Below are positions 10,268-64,000 of a stretch of 64,000 bases of DNA, piece by piece. The notes beneath the pieces were generated by a model. The model was not told where the DNA came from, searched no databases, and saw only the letters and a list, made by a program, of their open reading frames with translations. The DNA comes from Amphiscolops sp. MND2022 (lineage: Eukaryota): contig CAXLNC010001113.1 in assembly GCA_964187785.1 (NCBI GenBank), positions 62,001 to 126,000 on the forward strand, written 5' to 3'. The stretch's first letter is position 1. Every line of letters begins with the position of its first letter. The position numbers and the translations under genes were made by a program.

Positions 10268-10280
10268 CTCCCCCTCGCGG
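10268..10280 (-). promoter_or_regulatory. Polypurine tract (CCGCGAGGGGGAG) of copy A
   Basis: Directly precedes the TG of the LTR; identical in B and C. The GAGGGGGAG core is typical of copia PPTs. Confidence 0.9.
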
Positions 10281-10408
10281 CAACATGGAGCGAGTCATCC
10301 CTTCTGTGAAACAAAAGAAGCAGAGGACCTACAAGCCATCACAGCAACCGTTGCTGTTCCTCACAATGGGGCAGATCATGCCTCAACCCTTCTGCGAGAG
10401 ATGACGTC

Positions 10409-19428: not shown

Positions 19429-19429
19429 C

Positions 19430-19959
19430 CTTCTCCTGGCCCGTGAGTTTCTTTTGTTTGATATGTTTTCCTGTTTGCTTTCAAAAGGGCTTCTTACATT
19501 TCTCTCTCCATTGTTTTCTGTTATTATTGTTGTTGTTGGTCTTGATGATGTAGTTATTTTGGATTTTTTTTGTTGTTTTTGTTGTGTTGGTTCCGGGTGC
19601 TTTCTCGTTCTCCAAAAACTCGTTTCCCCCCTGAAGAAGCCTTTTTGTGTATATGGTCCTCTCCTTGTGTGTCTCTGTTCTGGTTTTATTCTTGCTCTTC
19701 TTCTCTTGTCTGTCTTGTTTCTTCTTGCGTTGCTTCATATTGCTTCTGTTCCTCGTCCTCCTGTTTGAGTTTCTGTTTTTGCTTTCTGCTGTTCCTCATC
19801 AAAAGACCAATTCGTGGAGAGCAAGAGGGGAAGGGTTTCTTCGATGTCTTTATTTTTTTGGCTTATGTTTTGCTTCTAGTCTGTCCTTTGCTATTGTTTT
19901 TGGTTTCTTTCGGTTGATATCATGATGTTGCTGTGTTGGTGCTATTGGTGATGTTCAAG

Positions 19960-23219: not shown

Positions 23220-23661
23220 AAGAAGAAACCAAAGGGGGGTGGGGACAAAGGACAGAAGCGAGGCCTCTGCAAACAGACCATTGTCAGAAGCAGAGCCAGT
23301 CACAATGAAATGAAAATATGGAGAGAGGACCTTTCCAAAAGGACTTTTTCAAGAGGCATGTACATGACGCGGCGCTTGGTTAGCAATGTCCACCCATCTG
23401 CAGACAAGGCCAGCTTCCCAACCCCTCGCAACCAGCTGGCCTGCCTGTTCTGACGCAGGGCGTTCCAGGGGGAACATGGAGGTCTTTCACAGGTTGCTTG
23501 GGTCGGTCGTCCATTGGTTGCGACACAACTTCACTTGGACCTCCTTTCTAGTTGCACATATGATGTCTGGGTTGCTTCAATAGATCTAGCTTGCTAGCCT
23601 TTTTCTTTCTACATCCCACCTCCCTGCGAAGAAGGGCAGAAAACCCCTGTGTGATCGGCTC

Positions 23662-24435
23662 TGTGAAGGGTCATGAATGATGGATGGGGAAGAATTTGCT
23701 CTCACGATTGGCACTGTCTCCATACTCTCACTCAAACCCCTGTCGCTGGCAGCTCGGTCTCTGACAGAAGGAATCACTTCGAATGACGAACTTCCAACTG
23801 CACCACCGACTGGTGTGTAGGGATGTGCTCTCGGAACGCCGTTGGTGGGGGAACTTGCTGGGATGATCGAACCTTCAGATATGGGTACTTCAGCTGGGTC
23901 CCTAATCAGTGTTTGAAGTCGTGGGGGGATCAGGAAGTCGCGAACGCCCTCTCTCTTTCCGTTCTATCTCCGCAAGACTGGTCTTAGTTCTGATCCTTCT
24001 TTTTACACGGGGGCTATGAGACGACCCCACAGTATCAGATGGCCTTCGGGCATGCGCATGCCCAACTAGTAGGTCTTCTCCCAATGGAAGGCGTAGGTTC
24101 CCTCTTCCCAACTCCACCATGCCTCTCGGGCGAATGGAGTGGTACTGGAGGCTCGCCCCTTCCTGAGATAGACTTGGCTATATGTCTTTGATTTACGGTA
24201 AAACAATAGGTGTGATTAAGAATTCTCACGATGATGCTAGCCACTATCTATATCTCAAGGATCACACCCAATCTCTCTTCAGTCTTCAGCCAAAATGGCT
24301 TGAGGACGGAGGTGACATGCTAAGCATGCAGTTGCATTCTAGTCAAGAACAGAACCTCTCCTGGACCTGACATGACGACAAGCTCAATAAGTTGCCCGAC
24401 CCCAATGGGTTTGCAAAGGAGGAGGCCCATTGACA
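23662..24435 (-). repeat. 3' LTR of copy B (774 bp, TG...CA)
   Basis: 23662-23966 matches 43418-43720 with 4 substitutions and two 1-bp indels. Confidence 0.95.
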
Positions 24436-24448
24436 CTCCCCCTCGCGG
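24436..24448 (-). promoter_or_regulatory. Polypurine tract of copy B
   Basis: CCGCGAGGGGGAG directly before TGTCA. Confidence 0.9.
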
Positions 24449-27429
24449 CAACATGGAGCGAGTCATCCCTTCTGTGAAACAAAAGAAACAGAGGACCTAC
24501 AAACCATCACAGCTTTATCACTGTTCATCAACATGGGGTAGATCTTGTCTCACACCTGGTCCATAGAAGTGACGTCTCACCTCCTCCGCTGGACTGAGCC
24601 GGGTCTGCTTCGTGCTTCAGGATCTTCTGTTCTACTACCTGATGCCTGTCCGGCTGACCTCATTGCTGCCTTGGCGAGTGCTGGCTGGTGAGTAGTCACA
24701 AGTCGCAGCGTGCGCTTCAGCAAATCATTCTCTGCCCGCATCAACCTCTTATCCTCTTCTGCTTCTTCCCTCATGGCCGCTGCTTCGCGCCCCATCTGAA
24801 ACATCAGGGTTTCCATCCTAGAGGCTCTACTCTTTGCGGACACACTCTGCGCTTTGAATCCCCTGGCGAGACCGGTCACTTCCACCAAGAGTTCCTGCGC
24901 ATCTTGTTCTGGAATCATACCTCGCAACCCTTGGAAGAGCTCAGGATCAAGTCCATCATCCTCCCCTTCGTCCTCCTCATCCCGAGGGACTACGCTTTGG
25001 GGAGAAGAACGACGCTTCCTTCGAGTCCTGGGTGCCTTCTTTGCGAGACGTGATTTCGACGCCTTTCGACGCCTCTTCCCTGCCTCTTCCGGGCTGCTGA
25101 TCATGGACACCTGCGATGGGGTGTATGGGGTCTTCAGTGACCCCGGAAATGGTGACCTTCGATGAGGTTCCTGCATCACCACACATGCCCTCAACAGACC
25201 TTGGACCATCACTTCCTTCCTGCCCCTTCCGGGATGTCCCTGCAACGCTGCTCGCCTTCTGCAAGTTCTCCGCAAGCTCCGCGTCATCAGCTTCGTCTGA
25301 AGAATCCCGATGAGGAGCCTTTTCCCCAGCGTCATGCTGTTGAACCTCCTCCGCTCTCTTCAAGACGATCCCGGTTCTCGGCGTGTGGGGTCTCTTCTCA
25401 CTCTTTTCTTCAGCAGGCGCACCTGCCTTTCCGGCATCCTTCTCTGCCTTTTCTAATGAGGCCTTGGAGACCTCCGAAGCGGGCTTCAATTCCACCGACT
25501 TCACTTTCTCCGTTCCATTGGCAATACTGCCTTTCTTCGCCTTTGGCTCTTCGCTCTCAGTTTCCGAGCGTCGTTTGAGCTGGACTGCCTTGTCTGTCTT
25601 CATCTCCTTCTCGGTGATTTCGCCTTTCCAGGGTCAGTGAGATCCGCAGGCTCTGGAGCCCTTTCCCATTTCAAAGTCTGATCGTTATAGACCAATGACT
25701 TCTCCCTGCCCGTCGGCCTTGAATATGCCTGTGTTATGCCTGCAAGGTCCCACTTCTGGGTCTCAAGCCCCTTCCGGAGAAAAGCCCACCTTGGTAGCTC
25801 GGGATCCAGAGTGGCATACCTCAAGATAGCATAGTGAATCTCACGAACCTGACGCACGTACTCAGGCATGATCGCAGGATCCGTCAATCCTTGGTGCGAG
25901 TAAGTGATCCCATGGAATGCCATCACCTTCACAGTGTCTGATGATGTCCTCGTTGCTCCGGTCACAGGCACTTTCGGCGGTGACATCATGTATGGATGGT
26001 CCATCGGTGGGATCTTCATGCCGTAGCACACATTCTCATCATATTGTTCCATTTCCAGGTTCGTCATCAGGTTCACGTTGGTGAGCACAGGCTCTCCCTG
26101 GTGCCGTTCGAACTCCCGGTGGTACGTCTTCACTGCTTCCTTGTCCCACACTGGAATGAGAGGGAGCGCCTTCCACGGTGTCGTCTCTGGAACATCGCCT
26201 GGCTTCTTTTGCTCTGGTCGAATCCCAGTCGAGCCTCCGTAGATCCGCTTCCAGGTCAAACCAGCACCGAGCACTGCATGCTTTTCCAGCGCGACGTTTT
26301 TTTTTGGCAAGAGATCGTGCATCTCACGCATCCTCTTATTTCTCTCCCACCATTCCTTCCGGTACTTCTTGATCCACGGTCGCCACGGCACCAGACACCT
26401 CACCTCGTTCGGTCCACACTGATAGTCCGTCACCACCACACCCCTCAATGGGTCCAAGATCTGACAATGTGACGCACGCAACCGCCCTTCCGGGATCCCA
26501 TAGCTGCACTCCAGATGCACCCAGTGCTCGCATGCACAACACGGCAACAAGCGAAAGCACTTCACTCCTGGACATAGTGCACACTCTCTTTTGGGCGCAG
26601 TGAACTTGAACCTCCACTGTGGCTCCTTCACTTCCAGACACGGCATCTCTCCATCCCATTCCGGGTACAAGTCGTATGGATCCACAAGTTCCTTGACCGA
26701 CGTCCCGAACAAGATGCCCGTGCTTGCCTGAAGCTGCTCACTTTCCTGACCCACGTCACGCAGAACTCCGGCTGCGTGCAGAAGTCCCTATCCTGGTCAG
26801 GAGGGATAATATCCCGTTGGACGGTCGTCCATCCGAAAGCTGCCACCTGCTGTGGTGTCTCGAAAACACGCAACTTCATCAGGAACATTTTCTCTCGAGC
26901 ATCGCTGCTTTTCCAAGGCTCGCTCATCTGGGACTCTTTTGATGACAGCGCTTCCAGCATGTATGAGAGGATGACCTTTGGCTTCCCATCAGCCGTTGCA
27001 GCTACCACTCGGGTCACTGTCGTGAACTGGCCTCTGTCGAATGAGTACTGATGCGAGAACCCATCCTTGCCTTCCAGCCCAATGTACAGCGGTGTCGGCG
27101 GAGCCCACAGTTCTGCCCATGGAAACCGTGGCCTGCCCAAGTATTTTGGTCCTGCGCTTAAGCCCCTTCCGGGAAGCGGTCCATCGATCATATCCTCATA
27201 CTCCGGTGCATCACCTTGAACCTCAGGTTCAGTAGGCTTCGTTGGTTCTTCCTCCTCTGGATCACCAAAATCCACGCCGTCATCCACCTGCTCCTCATGA
27301 GGGTTCCCTTTCTTGTCCTTGAAGACTGTGAAGACATCCTTGAGCTTGACCATTGACTTCTCATGGTTGAAGTCCGCACTGGGGCTGGCACGCAGGCCAT
27401 CCATTACCTCCTTGAGGTTCTGGTACGCT

Positions 27430-28551
27430 CTTGTTCAACATTTCGTTTTGGACGAAGGAGGGAGCAATCGATTGGAGCTGGCTTGGACTAGATAACCCCG
27501 GAAGGGAGAGAGAGGCGGACTCACTTTTACAAGATAGCCGAAAGGGCATTAGTAGACTTCTTCGTAGACTCGCCATGGCCATGTGCAATGTCAGTCTTGC
27601 GGATCCTCCAGATGTGTGAAGCGGATGACCTGAGCGTCTTACAGATGCCAAAGACTTGCCCGTAGTGCAACCATGTTCTGAGGCTGGAAGGCATGTCACT
27701 CTACATGCAGATTTGGACCTACTTGGACCATGCCAAGACAGGCAAGGCGTGCACCAATACCTATGCTGGCATACTGGTAGAGAATGAAATCAAGGGACAA
27801 GCTTTTCCCAATGTGCGCGATCTCCTTTCTGTGAAGGACAAGCAGGCGGTCAAGGAATTCGAGTCGACTTCCGCAGTGGTCTACATCTCTGGAAAGGGAC
27901 ATCGTCAGTGGCCTTCGGTGGCAGAATCGACAATGGTTTTCATTGCCAAATGTGTCGGAAAGGCGAGGGAGGAGTTCCTCCGACAGATCGCTGTGCTTCG
28001 TTTGAGGCAGAAGGCAGCCCGGAAGGAGGATGAAGAAGCACTTCGTGAAGCGGCCCGAGAGGCATCAAGCAGGCCAAAGGTGAAGAACCAGGACAGGCAG
28101 TAACCCTTGATGATATTCAGGTGGCACGCCAGAAGGAAGACCATCTTCGCTACTGGACGGCTCCGTTCAGGTGGGGACTGAGGACCAGAGAAGGACCACC
28201 CCTGGAAAGGCTCATACCATTGATCTCCATGACTGAAGTTTTGACAGTTCCAGTGTCTGGAGTCAAGGCAGAGGCCGACTGCAAGCTCTGGCCGGAGTGT
28301 CATCAGTTGGGTACTTGGTCAGATGCGGGTGAGCCAGAGCGTTGGAATGACATGTGGAGACAGCGTAACAACCGCCCACATGACATCTGGGCTACGCAAG
28401 GCGTGGGAGAAGGTCTTCCAATTCTGGTGCCATTAGCAAAGGATCCGCGATCAGACAGGCTCTTGATGGATCAGCTGGTGGATACGGGGTCGAGAACCGT
28501 GGAAGGCAAGGCGGCAATGAACGGCGAGATGATCCGCAGGATGGGTGAGCA
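27430..28551 (+). other. Internal ~1.1-kb inversion in copy B ORF2
   Basis: Plus-strand ORFs 27431, 27693 and 28121 (LFNISFW, MSLYMQI, QKEDHLRYW) are the continuation of minus-strand ...DRIES, and are contiguous on the minus strand of copy C. Confidence 0.92.
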
Positions 28552-31500
28552 GGACTCAATGCGATCACCTCTGTCTGACTTGTTATCCCCGACGTTCACG
28601 AAAATGCCTGGCGACACACTCTTGGCTGCCTCGATGAAGATGTCGTTACCCCAGTCTGATGTCTTCAATCCCTCGCTTCCAGTCCTGATCTCAGTTCCTG
28701 CTGCATATACCGGGACTCCCTGTCCGCATTCAGACAATGGTTTTGCAACTGGAACGCTCACACAGGCATACAACTCAACGATGAAATGCACAAGATCGCT
28801 ATGAGGTGGCATAGCCTCTTCCGGGGAGTGAGTCTTCACACAACGATAAGCCCACTCCAAGAAGGCCCTCATCCATGAATCTTGTTGACATCTGACAACA
28901 GGGTCGGCACTGTGAGCATGGGGACTCGTCCTTCCTTCTGCACCGGATTGTCTGGGTCCAGATGATAGTTGGCTCCCAGGTTGCCCATCTCGATCTGAGC
29001 ACGTAGTCCCTCATTCCAGGGTATCCTAGCACCCCACGTCTTTTCCCAGAAGTAGATCAACGTGTCGATTCCCAACGCTTCTGGATTTGGCAGCGGAACC
29101 ACCGTCCTCTTGGGTTGACCCTGCAGGTCAGTCTCACCTAGACGTGACCGTGACCATTGGAAGACCCCAGCCGCTTCCGGGAAGGGTAAGACAATGACTT
29201 CACCTTGGTCTCGAACCGGATGATACATGCCTTCCACCCATCCTTCCACAGGAGACTCGTACGGCTGAGCGTTGAGCAACTTCCCTATCAACAGGCTTGG
29301 CAATGGCGCGATGCCCACCGCTGTCTTGCTGATCTCAGTGGAGATTTTGCTGAGGTTCTCCTTCTGTTGCTTCTTCTTGCGCTCCTCCCAATTGATTTGC
29401 TTCGAGCTGGCTGGCGGGCCCCCTTGACTGCGGAGTGATTCCAAGACCATCGTGGTGTAGGACATACCTGGATCCTTGTCTTCCTGCTTCTTTGCCATCA
29501 TCTCCTTCCCCTTTTGTTCAAGGGTCTTAGTTGCTTCTTTAGAGGATGGAGACTGTGCAGTCGGTCCTGCCCCTGCGGTTGCTGTCATGGAGCCCCTCGG
29601 GGATGATGCTGCCTGCTGACTGCCTCCCCTTCCGGGCGGAGCAGCAGTAGAGACTGACACGGATGGCTGACTGTCTCCCTTGCCTGGTGCCGGTGCACTG
29701 GGGACTGAAGCATATGCTGCCTTGAGACTCAGTGAGCTCGAGCGGGACTTTGGTTTCCCCGTCGGAGGGGGCTTCTTCACCGGGACTGTCCTTCCCATTG
29801 ATTCTGCCGGTGTGGGAAACTGTTCTTGAATGGTCCCTGGTGACTGCGATCCCTTGGTACTGGACTTTGCCATCACCGCGCTATCACTGGCTGGCTTGGT
29901 TGGAAGTCCCTGTACTGCAGCCAATCCGCCTCCTTTCGGAATTGGAGGACCTTTTGCAGCTGGCGCTTGAGCGGCGGTACCCTCCTGACTGCTTGCTGCA
30001 CTTCCGGCTGCACCCGCCTTTGACAAAGCAGAAGACGGAACCGAAGGTGGTGGCATAGAGGATGTCCCTGCATCCTTCGCAGTCGAAGAGGTAGCCGTCG
30101 ATGAAGAGCCCCTTCCGGGATCCAAGCTGCCTGGACTGGGCCGCTGCTAACAAAGAAGCTTTAGTCCCACTAGGTCCACGATATGCGGATGACATTCCCT
30201 GAGTCAAATCGAATCCAGACCCCATCCAAGGAAAACGTGCACTCGCTGATTTGACCGCATTTGATGACCCAACGCTATGCTGCTTGGTAGCGCTCACAGC
30301 AATCGGCCAGATGCGTCTCCCGCTATCCTTTCTCGACATCACCAAGAGCTCATTCTCGGCAGTTGTTCCCTGTCTCTGGACATGCTGAGCATCACACCAC
30401 TGGTCAACATGGAGCACATCCTTCCACTGCTCATCAGTGTCTGAGACCAGTCCCCAATCACCCTCAAAACCCTGTGTTGCCGGGTGGCTATTCAGCATGC
30501 TCTTTCCTCGCCACAAGCGATCGAAGATCCTAACCTCTGGTCCTGTGGAGCAATTTGCGAGTCCCATTGCCTCTCGGGCGTCTAGTGATGCCATTATATA
30601 TATGCCGTTGCCACTTCCGGGCTGTACGTGCAGGCTGTAGTCACCTGCATCTGCACCGCCTCTGCGCCCGGCATAGAGCAATGAGGAACTCGCGAGGTGA
30701 GCACATCCAGGGGCTTCAATCCTTGGAACAGCACATCATCCTCCTTGGAAAGCATTCTCAATGACTCAGGATACCTCTTCGGCCCATACAACCTCTCGGA
30801 CCCGTATTCATCTGACTTTGCGTAGGTGCCGCCCTCGATCTTTCCTGCCTCGTTGAACATTGTCATGAAGGCTAAGTCAGAGGTGATTGGTGTTCCGATA
30901 GACAATGTCAAAAACCGATCCGAAAGGGCTTTCCGCCCAGTAGTCCTCAGTCTTGCCCAGGGAGATCTTGATGGCATTCGGTGGGATCTGGAATGGTTGC
31001 AATGCATTGACTGCCGGCTGAATGTCCACTCGTGGCAAGTGTCCTTCCGACGTCAGATTCAACTCATTGACTCCCACCAGATAGGCTGGCCCATTCCGGG
31101 AAATGCCTTCAACCCACGACGACCAATCCTTGCTCTCTGCTGGTGTCGCCCAGTACTTTAGTTCCCTTCCAGGGGCGGCAAAGTGCTCTGTTCTTGCTCC
31201 CATCTCTCTGCCGTCGATTATGGCCTTTTTCAAGGGAAGCATGAACAATGGAGAATACGCCAGTGTAGACCTTCCGGTACCCCACTCTCCGCCATAAACA
31301 GGGCTCGCATACTTTCCAGTGATTCCCCTCATCATCACCTGCATGTGGAATTCCTCCCACAAAGCGTGCAACAGCAAAGTGCCATACCACCGATCTGTCC
31401 TTGGCCGCTCCCTTCCCATTGGTAGACCTGAGTCACCCATGGTCTCGCCAATCTGTGCAATGTTCTGCCATACCTGCATGACGGTCTTATACTTGAAACC

Positions 31501-31559
31501 TGCAGCTTCCTTGTATTTACGGCTCGCCCTTTCCAGGGAAGGTCTCTGATGTCGGTCAC

Positions 31560-33150
31560 CCCACAGTAGTTCAGGATGCCCTCGACCAAGTCAATGGCTT
31601 GCAGCAAGCTCATGATGTCCCCGTCCGGGTGGTTGTATCTATCCAAGGTGTTCATGGTGCACAACTCGTCCTCCCGGGAAAGCACTGCGGCCACCTTGAC
31701 TGCCCCTTCCAGGACTCCATACTCCCTTGCCTTCGCCAATGTTCGGGCCCATTCCGGGGAAAAGTCAAACGAAAGCTTAGAGCTGCCCATTGGAGTCAGT
31801 CGACCTGCATCGTCCAGCATGTCCAACACGCGCATCCTCTGCGTTGTAGCCTGGATCACTACCTTGCTGGGCGCATTCAGCGTTGGAAACTTCTCGATCT
31901 CAATCCCCACCTTCTTGCACACACTCAACAATGGTGCGATGTCAGCATTGAGCAACTCAGGGGTTTTGGGACCGCGAAACCGTCCCCTTCACGTGCTTTC
32001 CTGGAGCTACCCTTCCGGATCTGCCTCCTTGCTGAATCAGGTCACTAATAGACACTGTCTGAATGCAATTCACGTCCTCTCGGGATCTCAAGTTCGGTGA
32101 ACACACACGGACCCCTGTCGTCGAAATGACCACTGCCACGGACGTGAGCGTCGCTCCAGTTTGGTTGACATTCGTAGTCAGACCTACCTTCCGGTTCCGT
32201 GTCACCGCCCTCTCGATATCCTTCCGGACATGTGTCTTTGCTGTGGGTGGAGGAACCTTCATCCCGTCTTTCTCATGTGCTTGTAGACGTTGGATCCCAT
32301 ACCCAGACATATAGTAGGGCATTTTTCTTCCAAAGACTGCTGAGCCACTTACAGGTTGGTCGAAGTACTGCCATGTCTCTGGACTCTCTCCACTGTACAT
32401 CGGCACTATCTCCAAACCACGCGTGTACCCCAGTTCCTGCCACCTGATCAGCAACTTTGACAGAGCCCGTATCTGTGGCTTACCTGGACAGAACACAAGG
32501 AAATGATCACAATATGCTGCCCTTCCGGGACTCCGTTGACAAGATCTCGATCACATCGTTCATGATGCATGGTGACGATCAGCCTTGCCGTCAACTCCAA
32601 GACATTCGTCAGCTTCGTGATGTCCCTCTGCAAAAAGAAACGGGATACCTTGTACTCATGCTGATCGATCTCAATGTCCTGTGCTCCCGGAATTGCCTGT
32701 TTCAGCTCTGCCACGTCCAGTCGCCGACATCAGGATAAGGATCATAGTGTGGTTTTCCTTCATCTGTGTCCTGGCCAATCCAATAATCATCTGAGTGTAC
32801 ATTGTCCGCTCGTGCACCTCATCGGCTACCACAATTGTCACAGGGTGAGCTGGCTTCAACTCTCGGTTGTTGATCAAAGCGTACACCCCAATCGCCTCCG
32901 TCATGTACATCAGACGAGTTGCCGGACCGGCGCTCCTATTCTTGGACACATGGAATCCTACCACTGCCTGACCCACCGTTCCATGTCGCTTCCGGACCTC
33001 TTCTGCGAGCGAAATGGTGACTTTCCGTCTTTGCTGTGAGCGTAGCACCATGCCAGGACTCGTCACACGGTCCGCACAGTGCTCTTCCAGCCACCTCATT
33101 GCTTCCCAAGGTACCACCGTGGACTTGCCAGTGCCTGTCGGGCCATGGAC
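31560..33150 (-). pseudogene. DEAH/RHA (HrpA/Prp43/DHX-like) helicase domain in copy B
   Basis: GPTGTGKST (33118-33144), DEVHER, MSAT, LVFCPGK, TNVNQTGATL, QQGGRSGR and an HA2-like FSPEWARTL segment. Frameshifted. Confidence 0.88.
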
Positions 33151-53200: not shown

Positions 53201-56200
53201 TCAGCATATCCTTTCTCCGCACAGATGATCGAAGATGCGCACCTCTGGTCCTGAGGAGCAGTCTGCTAGACCCAGTGCCTGTCGGGCATCAAGTGAAGCC
53301 ATCACATATGCCGATGCCACTTCCGGGCTGAACATGTAGGCTGTAGTCACCTTCACCTGTACAGCTTCCGGTGCTGGCATTGAACAGTGTGGCACCCTCG
53401 AGGTGAGCACGTCTAGCGGCATCGACTTCTGGACCATCACATCATCCACTTCTTTGGACAGCATCCTCAGAAACACTGGGTACCTCTTGGGTCCGTACAA
53501 TCTCTCTGATCCGTAGTCATCGGTCCTCAAGGTGAGGCCGCCATCGATCACTCCCCGTTCGTTGAACATTGTCATGAACGCCATCTCCGAGGTGATCGCC
53601 GTCCCTATTGACAAGGTCTGGAATTGATCGATGGTGGCCTTCCGCCAATAGTCCTCTGTTCGACCAATGGAAATGTCCATGGCATTCGGGGGACCTGGAA
53701 TGGGTCCAATGGGTTGACTGCTGGTTGAATGTCCACACGTGGCAGGCGTCCTTCCGACGTTTAAGTTCAGCTCTGTGACTCCTACCAGATACGAGGGCCC
53801 ATTCCGGGTAATGCCTTCAATCCATGTTGACCAATCATTGCTCTCAGCAGGAGTCACCCCAGTATTTCAGCTCCTTTGACGGGTGCGGCAAAGTGCTCAA
53901 TCCTCGCTCCCATCTCTCTTCCCAGCAATGTCTGCCAGACACTTGGAGGAGTGAACGGTGCCACCTGCATACCTGACCGAATGAACTGACTGGTAGTGAT
54001 TCCATAGATTGGTCGGGTTGGACATCCCCGCATCACACCATGCACAATACCCATATGTTCCCACTCCCTGACGCATTTTGACCAGTCGAGGATTCTCTAT
54101 GAACAACGCATCGTCCGCCACAATCTTCTGGCTTGTCCTGAAGTGTTTAAACCCTCGTAAGCCTCTGCATCACGATCCGCGGCTTGGTCTCTCGTGTCAG
54201 TCTGATACATATTCGTATCCTCCAATTCAAAGGCCTGTGCGCTTCCAGCTTGGCCCAAGAGAATCTCCGTCTTCCATGGTAGCCCTGATCTTCGGGTCAT
54301 CACCCTTCGCAGCCTCATCTTCTGACGATCCCACATGTAACATGATGACGACTGGAAACACACCGTCTTCAGCTCTTGAGCAGCAGGGGCATCCACCTGT
54401 GAAGTTTCTTCTTTCCTTCCTTGGATACGTTCCACAAGATCACCCTCATCGTCATCTCCGTCTTAATCATCTCCATGGTCTCAAAGCAGGCATTCACTGA
54501 CATATCCAGCATACAGTCCGCCGACATCACGTCATAGACAATCTCCAATTCCTGGGATGGTATCAAGAACCTGATGTGCCAGCGACACCGTGAACACATT
54601 CGCACCCGTTGGTTTGTGCACTTCCGGTTCTGGTACCTGGTACCTGATCAATGTGGACGACCATTGCCCTCGCTCCCGGCTGCAGCCTTGCTGTTGACAC
54701 CATGTCTCTCAAGATCGGGCTCCTCAACAGCTGCCTGTACACCTCACGACTGTCTCCATCCTCCCAGTGCGTCTGGATCCACCAATCCCTCTCAATCAAC
54801 CACTCACTGGGATCGGGATCAGCCACTGTAACACTGGACTACCGTCGATGATCGTCTTCTTCAACGGGAGCATGACCAATGGCGAATACGCCAGCGTGGA
54901 CCTTCCGGTACCCCATTCACCTCCGTACACCGGGCTTGCGTACTTTCCAGTAATCCCTCGCAACATCACCTGCATATGAAATCCTTCCCAGAAAGCATGT
55001 AGCAAAAGGGTGCCATACCAGCGGTCTGTCCTGGGTCTCTCCCTTCCCTGGGGTAATCCTGGCTGACCCTTTCCAGGGGAGATCCCGTATGTCCCTTACG
55101 TCGTACATCTTCAAGATGCCTTCGACCAGGTCGATTGCCTGCAGCAGACTCATGATGTCCCCGTCCGGGTGATTGTAGCGATCCATGGTGTTCATCGTGC
55201 ACAATTCATCCTCTCGGGAGAGCACTGCTGCCACCTTGACTGCCCCTTCCAGGACTCCATACTCCCTCGCCTTCGCCAATGTTCGGGCCCATTCCGGGGA
55301 GAAATCGAACGAAAGCTTGGACTGTCCCATGAGCGTCAAGTGACCCTTGTCATCTATCATGTCCAGCATCCTCATCCTTTGTGCAGTTGCCTGGACCACC
55401 ACTTCGTCGGGCGCATTCAGCGTAGGGAACTCCTCGATTGCAATTCCCACCTTCTTGCACACGCTTAGCAGTGGCGCTATGTCCGCATTGAGGAGCTCTG
55501 GAGTGCTCGGACCACGAAACTGTCTTTGAACCTGCTCTTCCGAGGCGACTATCACATGCTTGCCTGGTGCTACCCTTCCGGATCTGCCACCTTGCTGGAT
55601 CAAGTCACTGATCGACACTGTCTGTATGCAGTTGACATCCTCTCGGGATCTCAAATTCGGTGAGCACATGCGAACCCCTGTAGTCGAAATGACCACCGCC
55701 ACGGACGTGAGGGTCGCTCCCGTTTGGTTGACATTCGTAGTCAATCCAACCTTCCTGTATCGCTTCACCGTCATCCCGATGTCCTTCCGGACGTGTGTCT
55801 TGGCAATTGGTGGTGAGGTGCGCACTCCGTCCTTTTCGTGTCCCCGAAGTTGGTGGATCCCATACTCTGAAAGGTAATAGGGCATCTGTTTTCCGAAGAC
55901 CTTGGAGCCGCTTACAGGTTGGTCAAAGTACTGCCATGTCTCTGGACTTTCTCCACTATACATCGGCACCACTTCCAGGCCACGTGTTGTTACCCCAACT
56001 CCTGCCACCTGATCAGCAAGTTTGACAATGCCCGAATCTGGGGCTTACCAGGGCAGAACACCAAAAAGTGATCACAGAATTGCCCTTCCGGGACACCGTC
56101 AACGAGGTTCTGGTCACATTTCTCATGATGCATGGTGACTATCCGTCGGGCGGTCAGCTCAAGGACATTCGTCAGCTTGGTGATGTCTCTCTGTAAAAAG

Positions 56201-57137
56201 AACCTGGACACCTTGTATTCATGCTGATCAATCTCAATGTCCTGCGCTCCCGGAATTGCCAATTTCAACTCCGCCACATCGACAGTCGCCGACATCAGAA
56301 TGAGGATCATGGTAGGGTTCTCCTTCATCTGTGTCCTTGCCAACCCGATAATCATCTGGGTGTACATCGTCCTCTCGTGCACCTCATCCGCAACCACGAT
56401 TGTCACCGGCTGTGAAGGTTTCAAGTCCCTATTGTTGATCAGAGCATACACCCCAATCGCTTCAGTGACATACATCAGACGAGATGCCGGTCCGGCGTTT
56501 CTGTTCCTGGACACATGGAAGCCTACTACCGCATGGCCCACTTCTCCATGTCTCTTCCAGACCTCTTCGGCAAGCGAGATGGTGACCTTCCGTCTTTGCT
56601 GTGAGCACAAAACTATGCCTGGAGTCGTCGCACGATCGGCACAGTGATCTTCCAGCCACCTCATCGCTTCCCAAGGCACCACAGTTGATTTTCCAGTGCC
56701 AGTCGGACCATGGATAATGATTGTTCTCGCCCCGACGGTATTTGCCAGGTCATGCTTTGCTCCCTCGGCGAGATGGGCGACGCTCGTCAACGTAGCCCTC
56801 AGGCGTTCCACGATTCTGTGCGCTGCCAAGGAATGTGTATCCTGAGCCTCTGCCATTCTCTTTGCCAGTTCTGACTGAGTAGGCATTTCCGCTCCGTCCC
56901 CAAAGCCACTTCCGGGCAAGGGAGGAGGTGGTGGTGGTTGCACTGCCTTCATCCTGGTGGGATCCGGCATTGCCTTTTTCTGGTGGAGTTAGAACCGGTT
57001 TCCGTTCCTCTAGCCTTCTGAGGATCTGATGCCCGTCGGACGGTACCTCTGGGAGTATCAGAATCCGAAGGACTCGACATTGGCTTGTCAGGAGGCGTCT
57101 TCTCGTAGTACACTGATCCCTCCCCTCTGTGGGACAT
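47213..57137 (-). CDS. ORF2 of copy C (~3,300 codons with several 1-bp indels): DEAH/RHA helicase - C2H2 finger - Ser/Pro/Ala linker - unknown ~1,500-aa region with PHD-like finger - basic/coiled-coil tail
   Basis: ORF pieces 56949..57137, 55990..56970, 54917..56008, 53897..54121, 53201..53857, 51997..52956 and 47213..51910 chain in one orientation and match B. Confidence 0.85.
49097..49216 (-). other. PHD-like C4HC3 finger in ORF2
   Basis: CALC-x10-CVAC-ENWV-HLEC-x9-CASHC. Copy B (26464-26583) keeps it with one Cys->Arg change. Confidence 0.7.
53981..54046 (-). other. C2H2-type zinc finger in ORF2
   Basis: CAWC-x12-HYQSVH. Deleted in copy B. Confidence 0.65.
55150..56740 (-). CDS. DEAH/RHA SF2 RNA helicase domain (RecA1, RecA2, WH/HA2)
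   Basis: I GPTGTGKST (56683-56709), Ia SQQRRKVTISLA, II DEVHER (56377-56388), III MSAT, IV LVFCPGK, V TNVNQTGATL, VI QQGGRSGR. Confidence 0.92.
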
Positions 57138-57292
57138 GGGTCAAGCTAGCCTCCCTTGAGCATCTTTCTGCAAACGGCTTCAAATAATCAATTGAATTCA
57201 ATCCCTTCCGGGTCATGCACAGCACAATTCATTGCCCTTTCCAGGGAAGCCAGTCAAGTCCGCACATGTCACACTATGACAGCACTCCAACC

Positions 57293-59230
57293 TCACAGAT
57301 AAGAAGGGACTCCCATGCCTAATTGGGTCATGAAAGCCAATTGAAGACTCCGACCAAGTGTCTTGGTCAGGCCGTCAGCCTTCTGTGTCTTTCCTGGTTC
57401 GAAAACAGGATCAACACACGGTGGGTGAAGCAAAGTCCCGTAACACACATCACGGAGATAACTGTAACACTTCCCGAATGGGCGTGTGCGCACCACAATG
57501 GAATCATTCCTCAACTGTTTGAGACCTGTATCACTATCAGTTCTCATAGGGATCTTCAACTGAGGAGTTATCCCTGTGCTCACATGTCAAGAGGGCAATC
57601 ATCACTCCTTCTGACATGGCAACAATTTCTGCCTCTGGGGCGGAGTAAGCAGTAATGGTTTGCCTTCTCGAGGACCATTGTAACACCGAATACTCTCCCG
57701 TTCCGGGGTGAACCAAACAGAACCATATAACCAGACCTGCTCCTTCCTTGGCTCGTTGCGAAACTGGCATCGGTGAAAGCATGTATATGAAAACAGGGAA
57801 TCTCAGGAGTCACTTGCTCCTTCTTGGCTGACTGTCCTTCTTGACATGTTCGCGAGGCTATCTGTCTTCCATGAGAAACCTCAGTCGAAACAGCCAAACA
57901 GTCCACCGACGAGCCCCTTTCGGGAGAAAGCGTGGACATCACAAACGCACGGGTGGTCCAGACAAATCTCCACAAATCAACTAAATGAGCAGCCACAACC
58001 TTGGGAGTCCTCACCATCATGGAAGCACAGATGCCAAGGACGCTGAGATGTCCGGCCTTGTCCTTGTGGCCAGCCACATCAGTTGTCCAATATATCTCTG
58101 GCAATCGACACATGCTTCCTTTTGTCCGCTTCCGGGAGAACTTCGTCAGGCAGCTTCTCATCTACTACTGGCAGGCGATGACACGGCTTCAAGGTCACAG
58201 CCTGTGACTCACCCACAAAAGAATTCTCATGCATACAGTGCAGGATGTACTTCTCCTGATCGCACAGAACCGTTCCAGATGAATCCCGGGTGATCCTGCA
58301 ACCCAGAAACCCAATCTGAACATCCCGCTTCTGGGGTCCGCTCGGGAGGCATCCTGACTGTTTCATCACGTACTTCTTTAACAAGAGATGGATAATCGGT
58401 CGCATGTGCACTTCCGGCATGGCAAATAGCAGGTCATCTACATACCGTCACCACACCGCCCAGTAGGTCCAATGGCTTGTCCTGACCTTCTGTCTGGACT
58501 CCTATTGAGCGAGCCGTGGTAGGCTTTGCTCCTTGCCTTCCGGCCTTTGTCGCTGGTCCCTCCTCTGCCAACAGCTGAACCACCGCCCACAGACACGGAT
58601 TTCCCTTTGCAGGAGTCAGACCATACCACGTACCATTGATTTCCCACTGCAGTTCCGCCAAAGAGTTGTCACGTTCCACTTCCCAAGCTAACGGTGAAGT
58701 CCGCAAACCATAAAGCGCCTTCTTCAGCTTCCATATGGTCCCTTCCGGGAGGAGCCTAGCTTCTCAATCACCTTCGGTGGTCTCATATAGATGTATTGGC
58801 CATCCAGGTCTGTCTCACGATCCCCATACAGTCTTGCATACAGGAATGCCGTCGAAACGTCCCAAGTTTCAATTGGCCAACCTCGATAAGACGCCAGAGA
58901 CAGAAGCATCCTCAGCATGGGGTACGATGGAGTCTTTGACGAAGTCATCTCATCAGGGTGAACGGTCTGGAAATTTCCACAGACCACGATCCTTGCTTTC
59001 TTCTTCCCTTTTGCCCCTTCCGGGTTAGGCTTCACAACCAGCACCAAACGTCCCGGTAAGATCTCCGCTCCACGGATATCCTTCAACTTGACAACCTCAT
59101 ATACTCCCAGTTTTGCAAAAGATTCTAGTTCTGCAAGTATCGCTTCCTTCCACTCTGCCTGTTCAGGACCAAAAACCACTCGTGACTCCTGTGTTACCGT
59201 CTTTGCCATCGCAGGACCTGCAAAGTAGTC
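57293..59230 (-). CDS. Copia-type reverse transcriptase and RNase H (with 1-bp indels)
   Basis: KARIVVCGN, WDVSTAFLYA, LKKALYGLRTSP, YVDD (restored by removing a 1-bp insertion near 58445), FTDASF, WSSRRQT and QKADGLTK. Confidence 0.92.
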
Positions 59231-60839
59231 TGGCACTTCCTGCTGACTCAAAGCTGTTACATAAGCCACGTCCACCGGGATTGCTCCCAAGTCCACATTC
59301 TCAAAGGTGACCGCGTTCAGCTCCAACAGGCGAGCCCTCAGCTGAAAAGATGCTTCTACAAGTTCCACTTGTTTGCTGATTTTCAATCCAGTGACGCAGT
59401 AGACCGTCTTCTTCTTTGTCTCGTCGTCACCTGTCTTCGAGCATCCTTCTTCCTCCCTTTCCAGGGGCTCTTCCCTTTTTGTCAGCTGCATGACCCTGAC
59501 CTCAGGCTGGTCTGCAATCTTCACCCAACGGTCAGAAATCAATTCCTCATTCTGCCAGCCGAGTTGGATCATTGATACTTCGAAGCTGAAAGTCTCCTCT
59601 TCTTCAGTTCTATACCCTTGAGATTCTGCCGAAGCAAAACTCTCCTCAGACATGGTATCGTCCTCCGCAGTCTCTTTGAACCCCGTCTCCCCCGTTCTCT
59701 GCCCCTCTCCTTGATCCCTTCCGGGTGACGCATGACACAGTGATTGTTGCTCATTAGTCGTCATGGATTCCTTAGGTTCCTTGAGTTCTCCCCCGCTTTT
59801 CAGCAATGATGCCTCTCGGGCTTGTGCTTGTGCTGAAACACCCTCCCCCCGAAGAACGACCACAGGACGAGCTTCGCGAGTGAAAGCATCAGCACGAGCC
59901 CGGCAGCGAGCAGCCACCGCCCGAATGCTTTCGGGAACCGGATCAAGGTCTGAGTACCACAGCACGCTGCGAATGGACAGAGTATGAGAGCTGGCCGGAG
60001 AACACCCAGGGAGGGCGGGTGTGGGAAGACGAACGGGGCCCTTTCCGGGATCAAAATATTCACGCGCTAACAGAGCACCCGTCTCCATGTCGAAGGTCTC
60101 ACGACAGCACACCTGCCTGGCTTTAGGGCCTCCAGTGCGGACCCCTTGGAAGACACGAACATGTAGGTCTTCACGACTCCAGGGCTTGAGCACCTTCTGC
60201 AAGTGTCTGGGCATAGGAATGTTGATAGATGAGACTACCAGGTCAACGTCTTGGGAGCGCGGCAGTAACGCTGGAGCATCCCCGCCCATCAGTTCTGTCT
60301 CTGCAGGGCCAGGAGGAACATGCGGGAACGGGACATCGATTATGTAAGGATCAATCAAATCCCCTTCCGGGGCAGACTCCGGTTCCAGGCCGATCTCTTG
60401 CAGAGGAACCCCTGGATCCATTCCGACTGACGTGTCTTCAGCCGGAGTCATGTCGGCCAGAGTCTCCGCATCTGGAAGGTATTTCGACAGATCATTAACA
60501 TACCATGCCCATCCCATTCCAAGTGCCCGCAGGTTCTGTACCTCCATGGCCCCTTCCGGGTGTAGCTCCTCAACAGTTGCCACGTCCAGGTCAGTAAGGT
60601 GCCATTTAACTTCACCATCATTGCGCACATAGGCTGCCGCTTTCGGGTCTTTGGGGTGAATGTGAAGCTTCCACCTCTGGGGTCGTCGCTCCCCCAATTT
60701 TCGCACCTTTGCCGTCACAATGACATTGAAGAAGCCGTCCATAATCGTTCCCACGGTAACTCCGCCTGACACCAAAGGATTATGACCCAAGCATACTCCA
60801 GTGACTCCACGATCCTCAAAGCTGGGAGGTTTCTTCAAA

Positions 60840-61470
60840 AATCGATGCACCACCACCACGTCTCCGAACAACGGGTATGAAGCATTCAATCTGATTCCCA
60901 ACACACGATGATTGTGAATATACGCCACCCATTTGCACGCATACGCCCAATAGTCTGGTGGTAACCTGTGTTCAGCTAGCAACGCCGTCGCCCTGACCTT
61001 CACGATCCCAACCCAAAAACGTTCAGCGATGCCATTTGCAGCTGGATCATACCCTGAATTAGTTGTTTGGCGGATACCATGCGCTTTCAGCAGACTCCGT
61101 ACACTCCTTGCTAGGAACTCCTTTGCTTTGTCTGAATGCAGTCTTAGCACTGGGGCCCGACAGCCTCCTGTCAGACTGGTCAAATCGTCCAATGCTACCT
61201 GCAAACCTGCCACCACATGCGGGTCATCTCTATTCTCAACACCAAGAGCCCATACCAAATGCACCTCTCGCAGACACCAAACGATCACCATCAACTGTTT
61301 CGCTAGATGAACTGTAGAAGGGTGCGGTCCTGAAAAGTCAAAGGTCAAGATAGGTATCTCCCTCGCCTCTTTCAGGGCCGAATGTCGGTACAGTGGTCCC
61401 AGCGCCCTTTTACAATAATCACATTTAGAGTCTGGAACTCCATGGTCCAACTTATGGTCCGGGCACTCAA
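60840..61470 (-). CDS. DDE integrase
   Basis: HKLDH...CDYC zinc motif, FDFSGP, HSDKAKEF, NGIAER and YWAYAC...YIHN. Confidence 0.93.
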
Positions 61471-61771
61471 GAAGTCCCGTCCCTTCCAGGACACGATATA
61501 TGTCTGGAACAATCAATGGCGGTGTCTGGCTTCCTCGTGTTGCCTGGACACATACCATCGCTTCTCCACCCTTTCCAGGGATGAGATCAGGTTCTTCCTT
61601 GCCAGGAGCAGCACCGCCTTCGACCACTTCGCCTGGCTCAGAGGACACTGTGATAGCGGGTTCATCATCTGCAAGAGGAGCTACCTCTGCACACCCAGAT
61701 ATCTCAAAACCAGGCCTCATTGCCACATTGTGAAGTCGAAAAGAAGTACCACTTCCGTGGGAGGTTTGAAC

Positions 61772-61900
61772 ACAAAAACGGCAAACGATCGGGTGAGCTT
61801 CATCATAAGGTGAAGGAGCACACCACGCATGAATTCTGCGACGACGCAGCATACATTGCACTGGCCAGCACGACGACGCTGGTCGCATACAGATTGCACA
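61772..61900 (-). other. PHD-like finger immediately upstream of integrase
   Basis: CAIC...QCML(R)...IHAWC...VCRFC. The fourth ligand reads CGT (Arg), one base from TGT (Cys). Confidence 0.55.
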
Positions 61901-62139
61901 TGCATCGCAGGGCACCTCTGCCACTGACTAGCAGAGGGCCCCTAACTGTCACAAGATAGAGGATGTCGCTGGGGACACCTTGGTCTCCCCGGTCTCCTGA
62001 GACACGGATCCCTTTCCAGGGTCTTGCTTAGCCTGTAACCCTGTATACGGCAAACTCACCTGGATGGGAACCAAGCCTAGGAGACTCTCCACCGGTGTCA
62101 TCAGTACAACATCCGCCTTGTCGTCAAGAGCATGATCTC

Positions 62140-63195
62140 CCAAAATCTTTAGAGACTGATTGGACAAAACCACGTAGCCACCTTTCACCTCCTTCATCGT
62201 CACGTCCTTCAACATCTCCCATGCGCTTTCAGCCGGCTCGAAGTCGTCATAGATTTTGCTCAGCTGCCATTCATGAATCCACAGGAAGGTTGACGAGAGG
62301 TACGGGTGGAGTCTCATCGTAGTGGCCATCATCATTGAGTAGTACATCAGAAGACCAAGGTACTTGAGAATTCCAGAGGTTTCCTTCGCTTCTTGAGCTA
62401 TGCGCAAGTCCATCACTGTCTGCTCCAAGGTGGTCACCGGATCATCGATCAGTCGAGGCAAAGTGATCGGTGCCACTTCGGGCGGCTGACTTAACTTAGT
62501 GAGATACTCACCCACAACATTAGACAGCCACATCATACTTGTCATCAACGCTGACTGCCATCCATGTTGTCCCAGCCGTTCCACGTCCCCTTTCGGAGCA
62601 TTGTCACACAACGACACTTGGATACCCACATTCGCAAAGGTGAACTGAGATGGATCTTGCCCCGAGGTTTGTCCCACTCGTGAGGCCCTTTCCGGGTGAT
62701 CGCTTCCTACATCTGGTTCGCCCTTCCGGGTCTGAATGAGCAACTGCGAATAGTCACTCGGCACATAGTCATAGGGCTTAATGAGTTTCCCATTGGAGTG
62801 CAGCAGCCACTTTCCAGTGTTGGTTCTGGAGACTGTGAAGTTCAACGACTCCTCCGTGCACTTGCATGCCCTTGCATGAGCTGTTCGGGTCCAGGACAGG
62901 TGCGTAACACTGTCATGTTGCTTTCGCATGTTATCACCATGCTTCACAAGAAACGCATCTTCCAACCAATCTTGTAAACCGCACTCCTGACCAAGGTTCA
63001 GTACTAGGTAGATGACATCAACCAATTCAGCTAACACATCGTGTGCAACTCCTGACTTGATGGCCTCTTCGATCTCACGTACCTCCTCAAGAAGCATCCT
63101 CCCATACTGCTGTCCTCTTTCATAACTAACGATTTTCATTGACGTCCCTTCCGGGAGACCCATGACGCTATTGAACTCCCGGGTCAACAGTGCCA
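62140..63195 (-). CDS. Two tandem MazG-like (all-alpha NTP pyrophosphohydrolase) domains; the first retains the acidic motif, the second is degenerate
   Basis: REFNSVMGLP...EEVRE...AELVDVIY...AFLVKHGDNMRK...GKLIKPYDY matches the EExxE/ExxD pattern and the DR2231/PRA-PH-like layout. Confidence 0.78.
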
Positions 63196-63519
63196 GCTGC
63201 TGAAGTGAACATCCAGTAGGTCCTGGGGATACTGCATGAGGTCTTGGGATCTGATCGACCAACTGACTCAATGCCTCGTCCACCTTTTCTGCCCTTCCGG
63301 GTCCAGTCTGCAATGCCGAGATAGAAGTGTCAATGGTTTCATCTTGGGCCTGTTCCTCACGAACGGTGGCCTCTCTCGCCTCCACATCGATCACAGACTC
63401 CTTCGGCTGGACTCTAGGCTCAGCAGATGCCCTTCCGGCGTACAGGTGGACTGGGAAGCCCTTCGACTCAAGATTCATCCAATCACGATCACTCAGTCGC
63501 TCCAAATGGCTAGGAGTGA

Positions 63520-63997
63520 ACAACGTCACAGAGAAGCGCTCCCCTTTGGTCACTTCACGGACTCGATGTTCAATAATGTCAGCCGTGAACTCCGTCCAGA
63601 CCAAAGGAACCGCACACGACTGCCACTCATCATCTCTCAGCATCTCCAGGTGACCGCCCTCATACTGTCCGAAGTTAATGGTGTAGTTGAGATACTCCTC
63701 ATGGTTGCGATAGTCCTTGTGCTTGTTCAATCCTTGTCCTTCCGACAGTTGAGTCACGTATATTCCCAGATAAGGTAGCTCCTTGGAGCAACTCGCCGCT
63801 AGTGCGTGCACCTTCATCAAGACCTCCTGGTAACGTTCCTGGAAAGTCCTCTTCACCACGCATCCCTGCTGCAAGCCTCTATTGGTTTGTGCTCCAAGAA
63901 ACAGTGCTCGCGATCCTCCCGCAATACTTGTCCTGTTATTCTGGTAGGGCCATGCGATTCTCTGGATTGTCTGCTGGGCATCGATAATTTTCTTCAT
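63520..63997 (-). CDS. 2OG-Fe(II) dioxygenase domain in the pol polyprotein
   Basis: HKDYRN (63713-63721), FGQYEGGHL, distal His in EHRVREVT (63566-63568) and ERFS (RxS). Confidence 0.85.
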
Positions 63998-64000
63998 ATA

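Follow-up and report, generated by a model that had tools for sequence, protein, structure and literature searches.

Several single-stranded RNA viruses, including MS2, satellite tobacco necrosis virus, parechovirus and enterovirus E, carry packaging signals that are dispersed along their genomes (PMC6281560; also PMC4751978, PMC3593212, PMC5431903, PMC7793301). These signals would be the closest concept for the pattern described here, which we found in a 64,000-nucleotide (nt) stretch of the genome of Amphiscolops sp. MND2022 (contig CAXLNC010001113.1, positions 62,001 to 126,000; the whole stretch is called the window below). The pattern consists of dozens of small hairpins with a GGAA loop, spread along the sense strand of a giant long terminal repeat (LTR) retrotransposon with Ty1/copia gene order, a length of ~20 kb or more and three giant open reading frames (ORFs). 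In the viruses, too, many short stem-loops lie genome-wide, coding regions included, and share a common loop motif on variable stems; the viral loop motif is virus-specific and sits on the packaged strand, and the retroelement hairpins are lineage-specific and sit on the sense strand. The viral signals, however, are degenerate and were discovered by SELEX or by cross-linking, whereas those reported here are near-invariant 10-12-mers that are visible in raw k-mer counts, and their carrier is an LTR retrotransposon. A sister lineage in the same genome bears a different hairpin, and for such a switch of tag between sister lineages within one genome we found no described counterpart in the literature. 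The searchable literature likewise held no relevant paper on GGAA or GNRA tetraloops in retrotransposons, nor on this motif.

Other known systems share parts of the pattern. In retroviruses and LTR retrotransposons the packaging signal Psi is confined to one structured region of the 5' leader and is read by the nucleocapsid part of Gag. It has in common with the present hairpins the use of small G-rich tetraloop hairpins as protein-recognition elements on the genomic RNA of a reverse-transcribing element. The retroelement hairpins, in contrast, are dispersed over ~20 kb, ORF1 starts right after a sequence that resembles a primer-binding site (PBS), and the ORF1 protein has one CCCH finger that does not vary with the type of hairpin. 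A localised Psi of the retroviral type does not fit, since the hairpins extend beyond any leader and Pfam gave no CCHC knuckle. Phage pairs of hairpin and coat protein of the MS2/PP7 type, and the boxB-N peptide pairs of lambdoid phages, are matched to their readers with little cross-recognition. There, as here, related elements each own a small hairpin in which mainly the loop or bulge differs, but those pairs use one or a few sites, which also serve translational repression or antitermination, against ~40 sites in the retroelement.

Two further comparisons concern the abundance of the motif and the helicase that the element encodes. The DNA uptake sequences of Neisseria and Haemophilus, and Chi, are over-represented words of double-stranded DNA in bacteria. 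Like the present motif, they are words of 9-12 nt enriched by orders of magnitude and tolerated in coding sequence in all frames, and their accumulation is probably due to a drive that favours copy-rich molecules. They show no stem covariation, however, whereas we are dealing with a strand-specific hairpin in a eukaryotic retroelement. The roX RNAs, host long non-coding RNAs involved in dosage compensation, contain stem-loops with repeated boxes that are remodelled by the DExH helicase MLE. They share with our element a short motif that recurs in the stem-loops of a long RNA, and their helicase comes from the DEAH/RHA family, the one that the helicase of ORF3 matches, but their boxes are few and the RNA belongs to the host and not to a mobile element.

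Coordinates are given as positions in the window, with the strand on which each feature was called. The three copies A, B and C all lie on the minus strand. A is a 3' fragment with an LTR and the end of ORF3 (9430-11761, minus), recognised by self-BLAST against B and C and by 6 exact motif sites. B is nearly full length (23661-43720, minus; at least 20.06 kb), decayed and cut in its 5' LTR by a gap of N, and was delimited by its LTR pair and its hairpin counts. C, also decayed, is seen over 17.7 kb by self-BLAST and continues past the end of the window (46291-64000, minus). B and C are 72-80% identical in DNA by self-BLAST. Relatives were taken from contigs of one ENA assembly, L008 alone coming from a second assembly. 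The family is represented in the ENA assemblies ERZ25074608 and ERZ26859043. They fall into a G-clade (A, B and C of the window, L005, L006, L007 and L008), an S-clade (L002, L003, L004 and L011) and a set of distant lineages (L001, L009 and L010).

The 9-mer CCCTTCCGG, which reads CCGGAAGGG in the sense of the elements, has 48 matches in the window, and 47 of them are on the plus strand, of which 6 fall in A, 21 in B and the other 20 in C. An earlier note on this DNA had given the same three counts by eye, and exact counting returned identical figures. Dinucleotide-preserving shuffles predict a mean of 0.62 matches (maximum 3). The sole minus-strand match, at 27498, lies within 27427-28536, a stretch of B that runs in the opposite orientation in C, as self-BLAST reveals by an inverted high-scoring pair with C 50187-51316. 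For the broader pattern CCYGGAARGG we counted 62 matches where 0.85 would be expected, with 60 on the minus strand; the only plus-strand copies (27497 and 28201) are both in this inversion, which bears out the earlier remark that the motif flips orientation there. Together the 60 minus-strand sites and the 2 flipped ones make up the G-type hairpin set x-C-Y[GGAA]R-G-y (9639-63301, minus), all of it within A, B or C. The motif is absent from the ~23 kb of window flanks, and the 9-mer has 0 matches both there and in ~50 kb of non-element sequence from related contigs, in agreement with the earlier note, in which none had been noticed outside the elements.

The motif occupies all three reading frames, where it is translated as PEG, PGR or RKG, and it is present at non-coding sites in the LTR and the intergenic spacer, as had been noted. 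The variants CCCUGGAAAGGG and CCGAGAGG occur 10 and 13 times in the window, respectively, at the places given earlier. When sense-strand k-mers with k = 8 to 10 are ranked after Markov correction, the top words all belong to one family, CCCGGAAGGG, CCCUGGAAAGGG and CCCGAGAGG. Counted as hairpins with a GGAA loop and a stem of at least 3 bp, there are 39 sites in B and 48 in C, or one per 350-460 nt in each copy. They are found in the LTR, the spacer and every ORF, and are evenly distributed over the element in 2-kb bins.

The repeated unit, x-C-Y[GGAA]R-G-y, has a 3-bp stem with a C-rich 5' side and a G-rich 3' side, and a loop of the GNRA class. Among all 256 tetramers, GGAA is the sole enriched hairpin loop on the sense strand of B and C: 61 of 394 GGAA tetramers sit in Watson-Crick stems of at least 3 bp, against a mean of 1.8% over all tetramers. 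Elsewhere we counted 4 hairpins with this loop on the antisense strand and 5 in the flanks. At CCC-N4-GGG sites the loop is GGAA in 15-17 of 21-24 cases per copy, and other GNRA loops are nearly absent, GAAA being rare.

Covariation was tested inside single copies, so that homologous sites could not act as pseudo-replicates. In B, C, L005 and L006 pairing at each of the three stem positions (closing, middle and outer) exceeds that in shuffles, with permutation p values from 0.03 to below 5e-5. The closing pair in C is C-G at 17 sites, U-A at 9, U-G at 4 and mismatched at 5, and its outer pair is C-G at 32 sites, A-U at 3, G-C at 2, U-A at 1 and U-G at 4. A-U, U-A and G-C pairs substitute for C-G in the stems, among which we found CCC/GGG, CCU/AGG, GCC/GGC, ACC/GGU, UCC/GGA and others. 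The fourth pair is unconstrained in the same single-copy analysis, and the bases beyond the stem are not conserved. The motif had first been proposed as a GNRA hairpin of the form CCC-GGAA-GGG; the hairpin itself holds, with three covarying pairs, while a constrained fourth pair and an enrichment of GNRA loops in general do not, the loop being specifically GGAA.

A homologous non-coding site illustrates the exchange of pairs. In the spacer between ORF2 and ORF3, B has twin hairpins 33 nt apart (33633-33676, minus), the second of which is CCCC-GGAA-GGGG (33665-33676), and C has the homologous twins (57203-57246, minus), the second being CCCU-GGAA-AGGG (57235-57246). The compensatory change of the closing pair from C-G to U-A that had been pointed out between the two copies is therefore real. 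The clade with GGAA hairpins also has a minor second class, GCC-CGAGA-GGC or UCC-CGAGA-GGA, with 3-5 sites per copy. Such variants had been reported as CC-GAGA-GG; they do occur at the places given, for example at 9889, 24122, 36157, 50662 and 59812 (plus-strand coordinates), but are better read in the longer form with its CGAGA loop, whose outer pair changes from G-C to U-A.

Coding constraints do not account for these sites. Synonymous-codon shuffles within the ORFs leave 0.5-0.7 exact sites (maximum 3-4 in 200 shuffles), against 18 observed in C, 15 in B and 16 in L005, so that the earlier statement that the motif is not codon-driven stands. The tripeptide Pro-Glu-Gly is spelled exactly CCGGAAGGG in 10 of 11 occurrences in L005 and 9 of 9 in window C, where codon usage predicts 2.9%, and the tripeptide itself is 5-6 times over the expectation from amino-acid composition. 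In the sister clade (n=4) and a distant lineage (n=1) none is spelled CCGGAAGGG. At conserved P-E-G sites the motif-free relatives use other codons, and only synonymous positions differ from the motif; at other motif sites the amino acid is altered, the motif having been created by non-synonymous change. The hairpin columns are 93.4% identical between B and C, whereas their 20-nt flanks reach 73.5% and the overall figure is 77.7%. Of the aligned B hairpins, 22 of 29 are retained in C, one shows a compensatory double substitution and one has changed its loop from GGAA to GAAA.

Nucleotide-level selection has thus created and maintained the hairpins, overriding codon choice and, at some sites, the amino-acid sequence. 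Since B and C are dead copies, the conservation between them reflects selection in their active ancestors. The earlier proposal of a strand-specific hairpin that matters at the single-stranded level is upheld by the covariation within copies, by the changes that create the motif and by the difference in conservation (93% vs 74%). Taken alone, this structural and selective layer, namely strand-specific hairpins kept by selection on nucleotides, is a conclusion in which we have high confidence.

Members of the S-clade share 61-73% amino-acid identity with the G-clade in the integrase-reverse transcriptase protein and ~65-72% DNA identity, and the distant lineages ~40-47% Pol identity. In the G-clade the motif CCYGGAARGG (G-type) reaches a density of 1.55 sites per kb in sense and 0.04 in antisense, and it is at 0 in both the S-clade and the distant lineages. 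Conversely, the S-clade carries another motif, YCC-N3-GUGG, at 2.23 sites per kb in sense and 0.30 in antisense, for which the G-clade and the distant lineages show ~0.1 and no enrichment. In 50 kb of non-element sequence from the related contigs there is no G-type site and the S-type is not enriched. The hairpin types are therefore mutually exclusive between sister lineages in one genome.

The S-type unit is a sense-strand hairpin, N-Y-C[CNNNGU]G-G-N', with a CNNNGU hexaloop. In L004, CCNNNGTGG has 47 matches against 9.2 expected (maximum 19), and in the intact copy L011 all 45 of 45 plus-strand S-type sites lie within the element, while the 9.8 kb upstream of it contain 0. The pair furthest from the loop, between positions -2 and +1, is formed at 30 of 31 sites in L004, where shuffles give a mean of 12.8, and all four Watson-Crick types are used there (G-C 11, U-A 7, C-G 6 and A-U 4, with 2 wobbles). 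It is likewise formed at 15 of 18 sites in L003, 6 of 7 in L002 and 34 of 41 in L011. The next pair out is unpaired, and at about three quarters of the sites base +2 is C. The architecture is thus common to both clades: three pairs that have C or a pyrimidine on their 5' side and G on their 3' side, beyond which the outer pair is free. What differs is the loop. An unbiased scan of hairpin loops recovered CNNNGU (z 9.3) and GNAA (z 7.6) in the two clades, and nothing above z 4.5 in L001, L009 and L010. Hexaloops with a cross-loop C-G pair, or pseudo-triloops, are found for instance in the iron-responsive element. The S-type loop, in which C at position 1 and G at position 5 flank three variable bases and a sixth base comes last, could form such a pair, although here positions 2-4 are unconstrained.

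We rejected a conversion of G-type into S-type sites in place: the two clades have their sites mostly at different positions, and of 13 aligned G-sites only 2 fall on an S-site, no more than expected by chance. A single homologous site has CCC-GGAA-GGG in L005 (7985) and GCC-GAAA-GGC in L011 (14639), a GNRA-class loop on another stem. A dispersed sense-strand G-run motif in the distant lineages was also considered and rejected, as their G-runs are single homopolymer runs. L001 and L009 have a G12-13 homopolymer run at the same place in pol (locus coordinate 11881).

What might such hairpins do? Our preferred reading, which we hold tentatively, is that they are multi-copy, lineage-private RNA tags, read by a co-evolving and likely element-encoded protein in order to select or assemble the element's own RNA. 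The hairpins would serve as multivalent recognition tags on the full-length genomic RNA, and their reader, co-evolving with each lineage, would single out the ~20-kb RNA of its own lineage from cellular RNAs and from those of competing sister elements, in order to coat or assemble it. Dispersed, multivalent tags of this kind, private to a lineage, are what a signal for self-recognition in coating or packaging would look like. If tag-rich RNAs are copied more often, the number of tags would ratchet up, and this drive could explain their accumulation in coding sequence. All hairpins are on the coding (sense) strand, and that this RNA is packaged is an assumption taken from the biology of LTR elements. 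That a sister lineage has its own, different hairpin at similar density speaks for a lineage-matched reader. The reader would most simply be encoded by the element, because one host serves both clades and the reader would have changed together with the tag. The suggestion of multiple packaging or ribonucleoprotein-assembly signals in the earlier note thus gains indirect support in its dispersed-signal part, from this other hairpin at the same density, and its packaging part stays inferential. A more specific form, in which each lineage carries a private hairpin barcode in ~40 copies per RNA (GGAA tetraloop or CNNNGU hexaloop) that pairs with an element-encoded, co-evolving reader, is possible, but we regard it as rather doubtful. 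It would make the lineages orthogonal tag-reader pairs that recognise their own RNA in one nucleus, and the switching of a tag might then resemble a speciation event among retroelements.

Which protein could be the reader? S-clade and G-clade proteins align colinearly wherever the contigs cover them, with 49-75% identity. The earlier candidate, the CCCH finger, fares poorly: as it is nearly unchanged across lineages, it is no obvious determinant of specificity, even if small changes may still matter. The fastest-diverging part is the N-terminal 640 aa of ORF1, with 35% identity between clades, and ORF3, which includes the helicase, has 49%. Candidate readers would be the fast-evolving N-terminal part of ORF1, or ORF3 with its DEAH helicase.

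Several observations weigh against the idea of tags read by an element protein. The function is wholly our deduction from sequence, and a reader supplied by the host is also conceivable. No protein domain has been gained in the hairpin-bearing clades, over the parts covered by contigs, and the one recognisable RNA-binding finger, of CCCH type, barely differs between the G-clade, the S-clade and the hairpin-free L001. The model of the ORF1 N-terminal part is a coiled coil of low confidence (predicted local distance difference test score, pLDDT, of 48), too uncertain to reveal a capsid or an RNA-binding fold. The hairpins are thermodynamically marginal, at -3.3 to -4.6 kcal/mol, and their predicted formation with native flanks (mean P 0.37) is no better than with shuffled flanks. 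Wobble pairs, 11 of the sense type and 10 of the antisense type, do not separate the sense RNA from the DNA strand. Finally, spacing is approximately Poisson and has no lattice-like periodicity (coefficient of variation 0.7-1.2 vs ~0.97 for random placement), and is more even than random only in the short L006 set (p 0.025).

The host reader deserves attention among the alternatives. A host RNA-binding factor could be recruited along the long transcript for export, stabilisation, suppression of cleavage or termination, or evasion of silencing, with no packaging involved. Hairpins scattered along the sense strand without regard to frame, in the LTR and spacer as well as in coding sequence, would suit such a factor, as would the lack of any gained element protein domain in the clades that bear them, and a 20-kb unspliced RNA would plausibly need help. 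One factor, however, would predict one common tag, whereas two sister lineages in one assembly have two unshared hairpins and other lineages there have none; moreover, neither motif is enriched in the 50 kb of non-element sequence. We consider this explanation unlikely. The element's own helicase gives rise to a different proposal, in which the hairpins, rather than being packaging signals of the capsid type, are entry or docking sites for the DEAH/RHA helicase of ORF3, which would remodel the RNA so that its three ORFs can be translated or so that it can be reverse-transcribed. ORF3 does open with a helicase of this type, and its 49% identity between clades leaves room for a change of specificity. 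Helicases of the DEAH/RHA family, though, usually load on single-stranded 3' tails without sequence specificity, and the hairpin-free L001 encodes the helicase too, which indicates that the helicase does not need such tags; docking is improbable on these grounds. The third use of the long molecule would be in single-stranded complementary DNA (cDNA), where the hairpins might act as auxiliary start or pause sites, for example in internal plus-strand priming during the synthesis of 20 kb of DNA. Internal plus-strand priming sites are known in some retroelements, the wobble counts do not discriminate between strands, and the 3' half of the G-type motif (GGAAGGG) is rich in purines. Nevertheless, the tract next to the 3' LTR, ending GAGGGGGAG, resembles neither hairpin, the S-type motif is no purine tract and contains U, and both hairpins start with pyrimidines. 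An RNase-H-resistant primer would not be expected to show stem covariation, and GGAA on the sense strand forms a GNRA-class loop while its complement would have no special property. We rejected internal primers resembling a polypurine tract, as the hairpins are unlike the element's own tract and have no uninterrupted purine run, and a role in cDNA at large seems to us even less probable than docking of the helicase.

The earlier note had suggested that GNRA tetraloops make tertiary contacts within the molecule and so compact the long RNA. GGAA is of the GNRA class, there are ~40 per RNA, and at one site B has GGAA where its homologue in C has GAAA. At CCC-N4-GGG sites, however, the loop is near-exclusively GGAA, which points to sequence-specific reading, the hairpin of the sister clade has a hexaloop outside the GNRA class, and neither k-mer nor gapped scans detected a repeated receptor-like motif. 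The suggestion does not survive well, and we give it very little credence. A binding site for a protein on double-stranded DNA, or a by-product of composition, codon usage, mutation bias or peptide repeats, could be invoked in that the core holds a CCGGAAG-type sequence, a possible site for a DNA-binding protein that we treat as a lead only, and in that the sense strand is rich in G and A. Against this stand a strand ratio of 47:1, an enrichment that survives both dinucleotide and synonymous-codon shuffles, and the use of three frames and non-coding DNA. The base pairs covary with all Watson-Crick types, so that the half-sites are not independent, and the motif is missing from closely related copies of similar composition. 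A cause at the level of double-stranded DNA or of composition is largely refuted, and we find it scarcely credible.

Should the hairpins prove to be tags read by a matched protein, they would be a clearer natural case of dispersed RNA recognition signals than any other so far: near-invariant, visible in raw k-mer counts, backed by covariation and under selection that overrides codons and protein sequence. For reverse-transcribing elements, in which packaging signals are thought of as one region of the 5' leader, dispersed signals would have found a new carrier. Two sister lineages with exclusive hairpins in one genome would amount to a natural experiment on the co-evolution of a cis-acting signal and its reader, and would bear on how related mobile elements avoid each other's machinery. 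Small and possibly orthogonal pairs of hairpin and reader might also become useful as tools.

The carrier is unusual in itself, with its ~20 kb, copia order, DEAH RNA helicase of its own and domains that resemble those of nucleotide metabolism and oxygenases. Our search of the literature for copia elements with helicase or MazG found no description of the family. The 3' LTR of B (23661-24435, minus) has TG...CA ends and belongs to an LTR about 785 nt long; it was identified, like the 3' LTR of C (46291-47073, minus), by its match to the 5' LTR of L005 and by boundary sequences, and the full length of ~785 nt comes from matching this L005 LTR to the 3' ends of B and C. On the sense strand a tract rich in purines, ending GAGGGGGAG, sits before the 3' LTR. 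The 5' LTR of B is partial, 304 of ~785 nt being seen by self-BLAST before an assembly gap (43417-43720, minus), and the LTR pair 23661-23966 / 43417-43720 is 98% identical over the part seen. The PBS-like sequence follows directly after the 5' LTR of B on the sense strand. The first ATG of ORF1 is inside it (window 43386-43416, minus; L005 3589-3620), which leaves essentially no untranslated leader. L006 is a relative of the A type, with an LTR 86% identical.

The ORFs were delimited with Pfam and tblastn. ORF1, ~1900-2000 aa at full size, is broken in B (37629-43413, minus). Its N-terminal part is a coiled coil, and it further contains a CCCH finger and two domains, one 2OG-Fe(II)-oxygenase-like and one MazG/PRA-PH-like. 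The finger, of Torus type, lies at 40297-40422 (minus; Pfam Torus, residues 319-360 of a 744-aa ORF). It is the sole finger found in ORF1 (Torus / zf-CCCH). The N-terminal part gave no Pfam or PDB sequence match, and no search was aimed at an aspartic protease. Of C, only the 3' part of ORF1 is within the window (61949-64000, minus), the rest lying beyond it, and Pfam recognises there the oxygenase-like and MazG/PRA-PH-like domains. ORF2 encodes integrase and then reverse transcriptase, the copia order, and is broken in B (33717-37713, minus). In C it is broken near its end and has the rve integrase core and RVT_2 (57297-61924, minus; approximate bounds taken from L005). In one 1066-aa ORF rve is at residues 210-294 and RVT_2 at 941-1051, both with scores just under the Pfam curated cut-offs, and precomputed Pfam matches on relatives agree with the order of integrase before RVT_2. 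The distant lineage L010 has a thymidylate-kinase domain fused ahead of the integrase.

ORF3 of B (24577-33567, minus), broken and holding the inversion, starts with the DEAH/RHA-type RNA helicase and continues with a long part free of known domains. ORF3 of C (47213-57141, minus) is broken several times, with the helicase at 55990-56970 and a 1565-aa ORF without Pfam match at 47213-51910. The best E value of the helicase is 5.6e-30, to chains of the Prp43/DHX15/DHX8/DHX9 type, and beyond it more than 1000 residues of ORF3 have no known domain. Decay was counted by tblastn against the intact relative L005. In B, ORF1 has at least 2 frame changes, ORF2 about 5 frame changes and at least 1 stop, and ORF3 about 5 frame changes and at least 4 stops in addition to the inversion. 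In C, ORF2 and ORF3 each carry several frame changes and stops.

Two assembly gaps, both runs of N, fall between the seen parts of B and C. The first (43721-43920) cuts the 5' LTR, ~480 nt of whose 785 nt are unaccounted for at the N run that starts at 43721. The second (44233-44377) is outside both elements, in the AT-rich and microsatellite-rich spacer between B and C (43921-46290), which has 36-39% GC, CT-rich microsatellites and short tandem arrays. The sequence after both gaps (43921-44232 and 44378-46290) has no LTR similarity, and continuity across the gaps is accordingly not established. The motif counts are independent of the gaps, because no motif site falls within 43721-46290.

An Rfam search at gathering thresholds and a tRNA scan of the window gave no match, nor did Pfam for the ORFs in the flanks. 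A run of long ORFs of 293-591 aa at 14910-19768 (plus), without Pfam match, interrupted by an N gap at 19186-19385 and 57% identical to an ENA protein, is probably another repeat family. Just upstream of fragment A, positions 8205-8990 hold nested direct and inverted repeats of ~160-200 nt with 75-91% identity.

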